Counted from the first letter of the whole stretch, positions 5,322-18,375 are shown. The stretch is 63,795 bases of DNA, filler included, from Octopus bimaculoides (GCF_001194135.2; 4 parts of 4 records of this genome joined end to end with filler, not necessarily neighbours in it), one strand, 5' to 3'. Numbers and translations are program-made. The notes: generated from the letters alone by a model not told the origin.

Positions 5322-5985
5322 ATGAATGATAGAAAAAGTATGAGTGAAATAGCAGCAGATTTTATTGACCCTTCGACGTGGCCTTTACTTCATAATGATC
5401 CTACACTAGAAGAGTTCGAATTCATGTCACAGTCTCTGGAGTTAAGTTCTGTCAACGATGAATGGCTATCATCGTCGGATCCTTTCAGTGATTTCAACTT
5501 CGATAATTTTGAAATGTTATTTGCAGACCCCGACTTTCTCGTTGCTAATCGTATTGACAATCACAACAACGAAAACGCCGACCGCAATAGCAGATCGACT
5601 CGTAATCCTAACTTATCATCCGCGAACCCTTCACCCACGCACACCAATTATGAGTCGGATTTCTTGGCAACTGGTCAAGACGAACAACAGACACCATCGC
5701 CATCATCTTCATCACGAGAATTCTTCTCTTCACAAACTTCAGCACCACCCTCACCCTGGTCCCAACACTCTTCTGTCGGTTCCCCATTGTCAACACAACC
5801 AGATTCACCACTCGGATTAAACACATCTGAGAATTCTTTTGATTTTCGGACTTTACTAAGTAAATCAAATCTTCAAGTTCCAGTTGAACAGACCCCAAAC
5901 AAACCCCAGCCTAAGGAAAAGGGGAAGAGAGGTCGACCTCCAAAGAAAAACCTCGACCGACGAATACAGAAAGGGAAAAGAACTG
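5322..5985 (+). CDS. Coding exon 1 of Myc/Max/Mad-family bHLH-Zip protein: acidic-hydrophobic N-terminus, Ser/Pro-rich middle, AT-hook/NLS (KRGRPPKK)
   Basis: Longest non-repeat ORF (240 aa) with AAAATG start context. Donor G|GTAAG at 5985/5986 is phase 1 and joins in frame to 11206. Confidence 0.85.
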
Positions 5986-7527
5986 GTAAGATTTTTTTTT
6001 TCGTTCCGTTTCTAATTAAACCCTTCTTCGTTACCATAACTTAGTTGCTTCTATTCAATACATATTAATTAACAAGGTAGTCTCTATGTAATCGCTTGAC
6101 CGGTGACGATCTTTTATATTACGACTGTAAACTTAATTTTAAAACATTAAAAATTGCAATACAAACATAAACGTCACTGAATTAATGCTTGAAACTTGTA
6201 AAATATATAATTGTATAAAATATATATTTAACAAGAATAGTCAATATAGCAACGAGACTCCACTTATGTTAGATGTAGGGGTTTCTCGTTTCGTTTCTTG
6301 TACAAGAATCTGGTGGAGTCAGTTACTAAATTAGAACAAATAATATATTAGCCAAATATATATTCAGATAATTACACGACCCAGAAGGTTGTGGTTCATA
6401 GGTCTGCTCAATCAAAGCTATCATGGGCTAAACAATAATTTATCACTTGTAAGTCAGATAACAGCATAACACTTATACACTTACCCCACCACCGGAACAT
6501 GTAGCCTCTTCTTTCACATGTTTCCACATTAATTTATACTTACACTATTCAAACATTGTTTTTTGTCTCTCTCTGTCAACAAATAGCGTTTTTCTTTTGT
6601 TCTCAAAGCTTACTTTCTTTGTACCCTAAGGTACTCTGAGGTCAACCCCGATTAGCAAACGCTATAATGGGTATGGGATGAGGGAGTACGTCCCATTTTA
6701 AAACGGTAGGGTATAAGGAATTTGGCTGTTATTTCAAGCAGGTTGAATGGCCATGTAGAGGCTTCCTCGTTAGCTCGTTTAAACATACAATAGTGGTGGG
6801 AAAAGCAAACCCTAGATTGATAACTAACCTATGTTTGTAAGCGTATATTTATGAATGTATTTTGTTCATAATGGTTAACTTTTCGACCAGTCTTACCATA
6901 CCAGTTCTTTGTAGATTTGGACAAATTTTACCACAGAGCATTTTTTGTTTTGTATAGGTTTATTTATACGTTTAGGTTAAAGTAAAAAGAAAGAAAAAGA
7001 ATACTAAAGAAACTATTCTTGGGATTCTCACACTAACCGTATTGAAGACACACTTTCCTTCCACCTCATGATTTTTGACAACCGGCATGACAACACACAC
7101 ACTCACTCACTCACATACATCAGCATGGTGAAAAAGACAGCCGGGGTAACTTAGTTACTCTCTTTTCTGTTTTTTATACGTAACCCAGCCAAACGCCATA
7201 GCAACGAACGAAGCGCTGATACTTCTAACCAGCCAACCCTTTGTCTATGCATTTTGTAACCAATCCTTCCCTTTTTTTATATTTAAACTTGAGAGACGAT
7301 GGGTCAAACTTCCTCGATCGTTACCAGTGACTTAAACAACTCAGTCCTTCATTCCCTGGTTGTATCCTGACAAATAAGCAATTTTTATTCAGACGATAAA
7401 AACAACGTGTTATAGCAGAACTAACAAAGTTTAATTGTGTTAGTTTGTCTTTGTAGAGATACTATAGCGACTTACTTTTGAACCTGTCCCTTATACCCGC
7501 TACGATCTCATAGTAGCTAGGTAAAAC

Positions 7528-7905
7528 GGTAGACGGACTATATGTAATCTGAACCTTTACCCCCTTATTTATTAATTTTTTTTTACGGAATCCCACGTTT
7601 TAGGCTATGGAGATTCCGATTCTGAAAAAAAATTGTTTGAAAAATGTCACACCCCCCCCCCCACCAAACAGGCTATTTACATGCTAGAAATAACAGCCAA
7701 ATCTCACAAAACTAGTTTTAGGGTTAGGTTTACCCTGTGGATCTATATAAAAACCGGGGGGGGGGATCGAAATTTTGAAATTGAGATTTTTGAAAATTTT
7801 GTTTCAGAATCGGAATCTCCATAGCCTAAAACGTGGGATTCCGTAAAAAAAAAATAATAATAATAAGTGGGGAAAGGTTCAGATTACATATAGTCCATCT
7901 GGACC
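7528..7905. mobile_element. MITE (378 bp) with ~100-bp TIRs and 8-bp TSD; Merlin/MULE-like
   Basis: GGACTATATGTAATCTGAACC...GGAATCCCACGTTTTAGGCTATGGAGATTCCGATTCTGAAA is mirrored at ~7799-7896. GGTAAAAC at 7520-7527 and 7906-7913. Confidence 0.85.
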
Positions 7906-9643
7906 GGTAAAACTTTATTTTTCTTCGTTCCATATCTATAAATGTAGACTCAGATTGATCGAAAACCAAGGAGAGGTTTATTTTTAGTTGAAAACATTAT
8001 TCTCCTATGGGCATACACGCCGTTTGTTGCTGCTATTCCCAGTGGAAACGAAACCAGGTCGTGGTATATATTTGCAGAGAATTTACCTCTTAGCTTCATC
8101 GTTTCTCACAGCTGAGAGTTCTTTATGAAACACAGTCTCTTTATTTTATTTTTAATAAAATGTGATGACTGGATCTCGTCATATAACTGGTGGTTTACTT
8201 TGTCTTTGATTCTGGCAAAGTCGAACTATAGAAAAGCAACCGTAGTCTTTCTTACCGTCTACACCTAATCCATTCCCTCTTTCTTTCTAAAGTGACTATC
8301 AATTCTCTTATCTCTTTTTTATATGCACTTCTTTCTGTGAGTTGAATATACAATGTCAAGCATCCTAAGTCACATTTCAACTGTCCCCCTCCCCCTCGCT
8401 TCCATCTGTTTCTCTATAACAAGTATGATCTTTAAAAGGATAGATAAGTGAAAGTGATAGGTTGTACCTTACACGAAAATAGTCACTTAAACTGGGTTGT
8501 AAGGGATGGTGAGTGGGGTGACTTGTATAACGTCTTTGCTGATAAAAAACATTCTCTAAAAAGTCTTTCGCAGAGTATCTCTCAAGTCAACAGTTAAAAA
8601 AAATAGCTTAGGGTCCCTCTAATGTTTTATATACTAAATAGAATTTAGTCTTTTTTTTTCTTAATACAGGAGATGAATAGGGTTGAGGTGTTGCCCAGTT
8701 TAAAAGGGTTGTGATTTTGTGTCTTAGCACAAGCGAGACGTTCAGTGCTTTTTATATTCTGTGCTCTTCACTTTCCTTTTGTCAGTTAATAACTTGTTTT
8801 GTTAATATGTATATGTCAGCTAATGTGATAAAAAGTTTAATCTACAATTTTCACTATGTTGATTAGTGTCAAATATTAAAAAGAAAACACTTTTTCTGAA
8901 AATTCGCCCTAAATGACTTTTGACATTCTAATCTAATTGATACATGCAATAAGTTCACAAGCATGGTTTCCAATTTAGTGAATTAATTTCAGGCTCTCAA
9001 TTTAATTCCAATTCCTGCCAGGGAATTAAGATTCATCGGTCTCTGATCGTTTGCGAAGAACATGGTCACTGGTTCCTTCCAGATTTAATGAAAAAATATC
9101 CCACTAGGGGTTGAATACTGAATAAATAAAAATCAACTATATTCTATATCTCCCTTACCCATTGCATGCTTATGGTCTTGTGTCAATAAATGTTTTTCAG
9201 TGCAACAGTTGTATTTTAGTCGTTATCTCATAATTAATCATCCTTTTTTTTCACTGAATATTTTGGCGTTATCCCTAAAACAAACTTATTTACTGTGTTC
9301 TTATAAAAAGTATAAGACAGTGGAAATTTTTAGAAAGTTTAGTCTGATTGAATATATCGGTACCTTTAATTTTAAACCTTAAAGTTAGAGGGAGCCTCTT
9401 ATACTCCCTCGATTTTGTAGAAATAGCAGCTAAATTCCTTTCTACTGTCTTAAATCAGTCCTAAATATATAAAATGACAGTGTTAATGACTGGAACACTT
9501 TTTGATCCATAAGTCTGCTCGATCATTTTTAGTTCTAGTTAGGGGGCTGAACAACCACTACAACCGGCCTATCGACCCGCTCCTACCATCAACTTAATCA
9601 ACCATAATACTTAACTTTCGACCCTTTTTAGATAAGAGTCGTG

Positions 9644-17944: not shown

Positions 17945-18236
17945 CGAACAGTGAAAACCTCTGCCAAGGCAACACCAATGTCCTCTCAACGATTGGTCAA
18001 TATCTGAAATAAATTTGACTGCTCTCAAACATTAAGTAAAAAACAGGGAAAATAATCCAGAATCCTTGTCCAGTATCGGATTGACCCCAAAATCTAATCA
18101 GTTTATGCCAATCATGAGGCCAAATATCCCTGAAAGTTTCATCCAAATCCATCCAGTGGATTTTGAGATATCTTGTCCAAACAAACAAGTTTGACTGAAA
18201 ACAATACCTCCGCCTTAGCAAAGGTGGAGATAATTA
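17945..18236 (-). mobile_element. Helentron/HINE-like non-autonomous element
   Basis: Subterminal ACCTCTGCC (17957-17965) and ACCTCCGCC (18206-18214), the latter in a terminal hairpin ACCTCCGCCTTAGCAAAGGTGGAGAT followed by AATT. Partial second copy at ~38460-38525. Confidence 0.55.
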
Positions 18237-18328
18237 ATTATTATAAAGATTATGAATATGTCTCTATGTATATATATATATAATTTGCATAATTTACTTA
18301 TCTTTTATGTTTTTTCTCTCTATTTCAG

Positions 18329-18375
18329 ACATGGACAGTGGTTTATCTGAAGATGAACATGTATCTGTTGTATAA
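18329..18375 (+). CDS. Terminal coding exon (DMDSGLSEDEHVSVV*)
   Basis: Strong acceptor TTTTTCTCTCTATTTCAG| at 18328, phase 1, stop TAA at 18373-18375. AATAAA at 18658-18663 is a candidate polyA signal. Confidence 0.7.

Follow-up and report, generated by a model that had tools for sequence, protein, structure and literature searches.

The window analysed here is a stretch of 63,795 nt of Octopus bimaculoides DNA (GCF_001194135.2; four parts of four records joined end to end with filler), and its plus strand carries, between positions 5322 and 18375, a real coding gene of three exons, the product of which has 374 amino acids (aa). We refer to this gene as A. It is probably a functional octopus gene for a sequence-specific transcription factor, and one of a small family, found only in coleoids, within the Myc/Max/Mxd superfamily of proteins with a basic helix-loop-helix–leucine zipper (bHLHZ). 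The parts of the gene and of its product are as follows.

5322-5985, plus strand: coding exon 1 (664 nt), encoding aa 1-221 plus 1 nt, with the N-terminal region, the Ser/Pro tract and the AT-hook.
5358-5546, plus strand: acidic/aromatic N-terminal motif block, aa 13-75 (23% D/E, 15% F/W/Y), a putative activation domain.
5682-5816, plus strand: Ser/Pro tract, aa 121-165, QQTPSPSSSSREFFSSQTS..SPW..VGSPLSTQPDSPLG, a candidate phospho-regulatory region with a TPxxS motif.
5919-5951, plus strand: AT-hook-like motif KGKRGRPPKKN, aa 200-210, of which KRGRPPKK is aa 202-209.
5986-11205, plus strand: intron 1 (5220 nt), canonical GT..AG.
11206-11619, plus strand: coding exon 2, aa 222-359, with the entire, uninterrupted bHLHZ.
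11307-11582, plus strand: basic region, helix 1, loop, helix 2 and leucine zipper, aa 256-347, with the E-box contact residues H271, E275 and R279.
11620-18328, plus strand: intron 2 (6709 nt), which encloses an assembly gap at 13782-13835.
18329-18375, plus strand: terminal coding exon (47 nt), aa 360-374 DMDSGLSEDEHVSVV and the stop codon, a conserved acidic tail.

The start codon of gene A is preceded by an in-frame stop 9 nt upstream, and every exon junction is in phase 1. The donor of exon 1 is G/GTAAG (the slash marks the exon boundary; GT at 5986, phase 1), and exon 2 lies between the acceptor TTTTAG/ (AG at 11204-5) and the donor CAG/GTACAT (GT at 11620). The assembly gap raised the question of a frame problem, which was dismissed. 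Its left flank ends at position 18063 of the Octopus sinensis locus (L009) and its right flank begins at 18059, which makes the two contiguous in that species. The gap, being within an intron, therefore leaves the reading frame untouched, and essentially nothing is missing. A (TA)n run at 5296-5312, which O. sinensis has in a shorter form, stops 10 nt before the start codon. It is too near to the ATG to be its TATA box, so the 5' untranslated region probably extends further upstream or sits in an unmapped non-coding exon.

In a search of 5.8 billion proteins, the window protein matched an O. sinensis RefSeq protein (P0001, 376 aa) with 97% identity over its full length, the 15-residue tail included, and an Argonauta hians protein (P0002, 391 aa) with 60% identity. 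Both are direct orthologues that match gene A in exon structure and architecture, and their names are machine-given only ("myc proto-oncogene protein" for P0001 and "myc proto-oncogene protein-like" for P0002). Exon 1 of gene A is collinear with exon 1 of both, and all three exons, including the one encoding the 15-aa tail, are conserved to Argonauta. The O. sinensis locus has an identical three-exon layout with conserved splice sites and is collinear with the window over the whole gene, with introns 82-88% identical and the coding sequence about 97.5% identical; its 4674-nt counterpart of intron 1 matches at about 87-88%. The coding differences between the two species comprise 20 synonymous and 8 non-synonymous changes, which gives a ratio of non-synonymous to synonymous rates (dN/dS) of 0.108 (0.08 in exon 1 and 0.13 in the remainder). 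This ratio, low in both parts, therefore indicates purifying selection on the entire protein, including its disordered N-terminal exon.

The end-to-end match to P0001, the conserved splice sites and the Argonauta model together confirm the joining of three exons into a 374-aa protein, which had been proposed in a preliminary description of this DNA made from the sequence alone. The fourth exon of that description, leading to a 389-aa form, had to be abandoned: the two introns contain 20 chance open candidates of the form AG..45 nt..GT, and no orthologue uses any of them. Argonauta has an extra coding exon of about 21 aa (FNSTFKPVDSTTCIVKYTDT) in intron 1 (L010, 6408-6497) that is absent from Octopus, and tblastn found no counterpart of it in the window. 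This exon may be lineage-specific or an artefact of prediction.

Outside the bHLHZ, the order of domains given in the preliminary description (an acidic/aromatic N-terminus, a Ser/Pro tract, KRGRPPKK and then the bHLHZ) is present in full in the window protein. In the AlphaFold2 (AF2) model the region outside the bHLHZ is disordered except for a short helix at aa 29-40. The N-terminal block is 60-80% identical to Argonauta in blocks of 15 aa, the conserved part running over aa 16-75, and its core, ME[LF]..[LF]E[LM]S...D.[WY]..DP, is common to gene A, its octopod paralogue B and the Sepia homologue. Despite its predicted disorder, the Ser/Pro tract is 67-93% identical to that of Argonauta; within this low-complexity tract, octopus and Argonauta agree fully at QQTPSPSS (aa 122-129), which is not flanked by Myc box I (MBI) sequence.

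The basic stretch of aa 196-225, which includes KGKRGRPPKKN, is also a block conserved with Argonauta. Checking the conservation of the RGRP motif did not refute the AT-hook: its GRP core is kept not only in the orthologues but also in the octopod paralogue and the cuttlefish homologue. The core with basic flanks is invariant in the A proteins of the window, O. sinensis and Argonauta, in B (KGKPGRPRK), in Sepia (KKRGRPRKN) and in two copies in an ENA contig (KKRGRPRKSE); the forms seen across the family are KRGRPPK, KRGRPSK, KPGRPRK and KRGRPRK. Against the Pfam AT_hook model (PF02178) the Sepia segment passes the cut-off of 17.4 with 20.4 bits, and the window segment, with 16.1 bits, is 1.3 bits short of it. 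The R-G-R-P core with K/R flanks is shared with HMGA-type AT-hook proteins; unlike these, the window protein has a single hook, inside a bHLHZ factor, and a proline after the GRP (RGRPPKK).

The protein was also expected to run past its zipper, and it does so by 27 residues, 15 of which come from the separate conserved exon. The tail block of aa 361-374 is conserved with Argonauta. O. sinensis has exactly the same tail peptide; that of Argonauta is EMDAALSEDEYVSVV and that of paralogue B DTDEDEECSVVEIM, and in Sepia the tail is acidic and ends in ..SEEEHINVEV. The end ..SEDE[HY]VSVV-COOH resembles acidic serines of the CK2 type followed by an S-x-V terminus like that of a class-I PDZ ligand; paralogue B has ..DEDEECSVVEIM.

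The bHLHZ itself is encoded without interruption in exon 2. Pfam recognizes the HLH only (aa 268-316, E 4.5e-6). The best sequence match in the PDB is human c-Myc (1nkp_A), gapless over 79 residues, in which H271, E275 and R279 align with H359, E363 and R367 of Myc, which bears out the H-x3-E-x3-R signature that had been read in the basic region. AF2 predicts helices at 265-292 and 304-347 with a predicted local distance difference test score (pLDDT) above 90, and the best Foldseek match in the PDB is the MYC chain of MYC:MAX (6g6j_A; TM 0.83, root-mean-square deviation 1.9 Å). The zipper heptads have L-L-L-M at the d positions and E-K-R-I at the a positions, of which E and R match E410 and R424 of Myc. 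The segment of aa 256-330 is a further block conserved with Argonauta.

Like Myc, then, the window protein carries a group-B bHLHZ at the C-terminal side of a long disordered protein, with the H-E-R contacts to the E-box, an equal loop length, an L-L-L-(M) heptad pattern and charged a positions (E410 and R424 of Myc), and its bHLHZ lies in one exon after one large coding exon. In vertebrate and fly Myc, too, a single uninterrupted exon encodes the bHLHZ. Unlike Myc, it has no signal of Myc_N, MBI or Myc box II (MBII), its bHLHZ is only about 27% identical, and it does not group with Myc in a tree; it has instead a conserved AT-hook, an extension of 27 residues beyond the zipper, an extra terminal exon and the acidic ..SVV tail. 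With Max the family shares the KAS motif of the loop and the D-x-A start of helix 2, with a loop one residue longer than that of Max. Max, at ~160 aa, is short, has its bHLHZ at the N-terminus and lacks an activation region; the window protein is 374 aa long, carries its bHLHZ at aa 256-347 and shows H-R where Max has Q91/N92.

The absence of recognizable Myc boxes, also part of the preliminary description, was borne out. No match to Myc_N at E ≤ 10 was obtained with Pfam in the window protein, P0001, P0002 or the B protein P0003, nor one to Myc-LZ in the window protein. When the N-termini of the family were compared by hhalign with those of human MYC, MYCN and MYCL, which were entered by hand, the probability was only 0.08%, and hence the statement holds. 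Likenesses noted by eye, of PSTWPLL to MBI, of NDEWLSS to the DCMW motif and of LEEFEFMSQSLE to MB0, were rejected, as neither Pfam nor hhalign gave any signal.

On grounds of sequence, gene A is placed in a family restricted to coleoids that comprises two octopod genes, the paralogues A and B, and one expressed Sepia type. The members other than the A proteins are as follows.

Paralogue B of O. bimaculoides: LOC106881876, P0003, 456 aa; gene at 10001-22384 of L008, which is CM046628.1 16,937,983-16,970,366.
Paralogue B of O. vulgaris: P0008, CAI9742976.1, automated name "myc proto-oncogene protein-like".
Paralogue B of O. sinensis: LOC115228325, P0016, automated model XP_029654790.1.
Decapod type: P0005 (282 aa) and the fragments P0006 and P0007, obtained in profile searches.

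Common to all members are the N-terminal motif, the GRP hook with basic flanks, KKRKCM[TS]..EK..HN.LER.RR, DD.KAS.K.IVDEA, the zipper and the acidic tail, the last residues of which are SVV in both A and B. The three-exon layout of A, with an unsplit bHLHZ exon, recurs in paralogue B and in a contig with a decapod-type gene. Intron 2 lies directly after ..HG/..KG, in phase 1, both in B (L008, ~15915-15921) and in the decapod type (L007, ~740). In the window its donor is 10 codons further 3' (11590-11619) in the same phase, which resembles a 30-nt sliding of the donor. The uninterrupted coding sequence of P0005 was assembled in at least six RNA-seq runs, among them SRR19578107 and SRR23936171, which are larval transcriptomes of Sepia esculenta (PMC10141105, PMC10571815); the family is therefore expressed in cuttlefish. 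The decapod-type contig (L007; ENA ERZ16307053, k119_737025, nt 1-1239) comes from a metagenome. On it, an intron of about 190 nt separates the 3' part of an exon 1, which has KKRGRPRKSE, from a bHLHZ exon, and this is followed about 350 nt downstream by a second exon 1 with KKRGRPRKSE. The layout points to copies in tandem, or to an array that has been collapsed, with tiny introns and of cephalopod origin.

When 1.84 billion cluster representatives were scanned exhaustively with HMMER and the A-type profile, only 10 proteins reached E ≤ 1e-3. Six were members of the family, and the other four were a Hydractinia Mnt-like protein (43 bits), a nematode Mad-like protein (36.5), a Haliotis MNT-like protein (35) and a Max-like fragment. 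A further large protein search with the family profile returned members of the family only and no mollusc Myc. In the literature on cephalopod Myc or on AT-hooks combined with bHLHZ domains we found no description of the family, of its AT-hook or of its missing Myc boxes. The family and its architecture thus appear to be undescribed, though the genes sit in databases under automated Myc names.

If gene A encodes such a transcription factor, its basic region would read an E-box of the CACGTG type through H271, E275 and R279 as one half of a dimer. Homodimers are expected to be weak, because the zipper core keeps charged a residues (E, K and R), as in Myc, and the protein would act as a heterodimer with Max or with octopod paralogue B. 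At the positions of Myc R423-R424 and Max Q91-N92, A has H-R and paralogue B has D-N; with D-N opposite H-R at these zipper tetrad positions, A and B could pair with each other. The AT-hook, which precedes the basic region by about 50 residues, may contact the minor groove of AT-rich DNA beside the E-box, serve as a nuclear localization signal (NLS), or both. The acidic/aromatic N-terminus would take over from the Myc boxes as the surface for activation, and the conserved Ser/Pro tract (TPSPS) and the acidic SEDE..SVV tail are probably regulatory.

Several results weigh against this reading. The Logan contigs of the octopod A type are genomic read-throughs, with no transcript among them. The hook of the window protein, RGRPPKK, is slightly degenerate and could act as an NLS alone, and the suggested partners are drawn by analogy from a few zipper residues. 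As to the place of the family in the network, the A-type scan of the 1.84 billion representatives contained no canonical Myc at E ≤ 1e-3; a profile of eight bHLHZ domains of the family scored 47.9 bits with human Max, 46.5 with Myc, 36.8 with USF2 and 30.2 with Mad; and pairwise identities of the bHLHZ to Myc, Max and Mnt are 26-31% each. In a neighbour-joining (NJ) tree with 300 bootstraps and a small reference set, several sequences of which were entered by hand, the family was monophyletic (89%), with A and B together and the Sepia type outside (80%); its placement relative to Myc, Mad, Mnt and Max had less than 25% support. Because scan, profile, identity and tree favour no single member, we regard the family as a coleoid-restricted clade of the Max-network superfamily and not firmly as Myc. 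The preliminary description had called the gene a lineage-specific, Myc-type paralogue of the Myc network. Its lineage-restricted membership of the network superfamily stood, the family being confined to coleoids; the label "Myc-type" was not borne out, as Max and Myc score equally, the scan returns relatives of Mnt, Max and Mad, and the tree does not place the family. A competition with Myc for Max, which that description also suggested, is conjectural.

That gene A is a decaying pseudogene, or chance open reading frames stitched together, can practically be dismissed. RNA for the exact locus was not among the data retrieved, and the last exon has only 47 nt; against this stand the dN/dS of 0.11 over both large exons, the excess of exon over intron identity to O. 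sinensis, the conservation to Argonauta of three exons with canonical, conserved splice sites, the 15-aa tail included, and the expression of the homologous Sepia gene. A more serious, though still doubtful, alternative is that the family is the cephalopod Myc orthologue, an ancestral Myc that diverged in the coleoid stem, lost MBI and MBII, gained the AT-hook and the C-terminal exon and was duplicated in octopods, no canonical Myc being left in cephalopods. The long disordered N-terminus, the basic/NLS stretch and the C-terminal bHLHZ in one exon would fit this, as would the loop length and the retained equivalents of E410 and R424, the single-sequence PDB and Foldseek searches, both of which favour Myc, the RefSeq name, and the tree, which suggests one ancestral coleoid gene. 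However, the N-termini have no profile similarity to Myc, and the bHLHZ is no nearer to Myc than to Max or Mnt. Moreover, a loss of MBII would be exceptional, given that the MBII/TRRAP module is conserved in spiralians (PMC7854359) and that most molluscs keep one ordinary Myc (PMC5381572). On the question of origin we thus have some preference for an extra, lineage-specific member of the network over a divergent Myc orthologue.

A place for the family in the repressor arm (Mxd/Mad or Mnt), as a divergent member such as a fast-evolving remnant of MAD, is improbable. O. bimaculoides is scored MAD = N and MNT = Y, and other molluscs have MAD (PMC7854359, Supplementary Table 11); Mnt and Mxd (Mad) belong to the same network, the best non-family matches of the exhaustive scan are Mnt-like and Mad-like, and the NJ tree puts the family beside Mad and Mnt with 18% support. 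Yet the basic region of the family is ERRRR/ERERR, not EKNRR as in Mad and Mnt, its bHLHZ exon is unsplit, whereas two introns split the bHLHZ of Haliotis Mnt, and about 260 residues, with the acidic/aromatic kind of N-terminus that is usual in activators, precede its bHLHZ, which is C-terminal. Unlike Mxd and Mnt, the family also lacks the Sin3-interaction domain (SID) LLEAA[DE][YF]LE, a motif present in P0009 and P0012. By eye, AADFID (aa 11-16) is faintly like the SID core AADYLE, and an SID at aa 9-16 was considered and rejected: the likeness is not conserved beyond the window and O. sinensis (TADIVD in Argonauta and nothing comparable in B and Sepia), and AF2 predicts no helix there. The absence of MAD from O. 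bimaculoides may be a true loss, or the orthology call may have been confounded by these divergent bHLHZ genes. A bolder view, which we consider unlikely, is that the family is a private coleoid branch of the network without Myc boxes, either as the last remnant of cephalopod Myc or as a Myc:Max-like heterodimer of A and B; either way, the AT-hook would retarget E-box binding to AT-rich contexts.

Few growth-control circuits of animals are as conserved as the Myc/Max/Mxd network, and its set of members is regarded as almost constant across bilaterians. If gene A and its relatives are indeed a coleoid-only family of this superfamily, such a selectively maintained, cephalopod-only branch would be a rare innovation in the network. 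It would join an E-box-reading bHLHZ with an AT-hook, a different, acidic/aromatic N-terminus in place of the Myc boxes and a conserved C-terminal tail, in a lineage known for large-scale regulatory reorganization. As annotations and transcriptome studies name these genes "Myc", their functional interpretation may be misled.

The window as a whole has the composition of AT-rich eukaryotic DNA (37% GC) and is rich in microsatellites; other meaningful open reading frames, tRNAs and Rfam families were sought in it and none was found. An interspersed repeat of about 180 nt occurs at 3936-4120 and 18995-19184, inverted around gene A, and in at least eight copies in the 33-kb O. sinensis locus; it may be like a short interspersed nuclear element, and ARAGORN found no tRNA-like head in it. 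Three copies of a 192-nt repeat (1489-1680, 1706-1897 and 23113-23304; 75-91% identity), with several matches in the O. sinensis locus, represent a dispersed element. Downstream of the gene, a tandem array at 20325-21155, built of units of about 36-38 nt (two units making 73 nt), adjoins an assembly gap of 415 nt (20446-20860), which probably lies inside this minisatellite.

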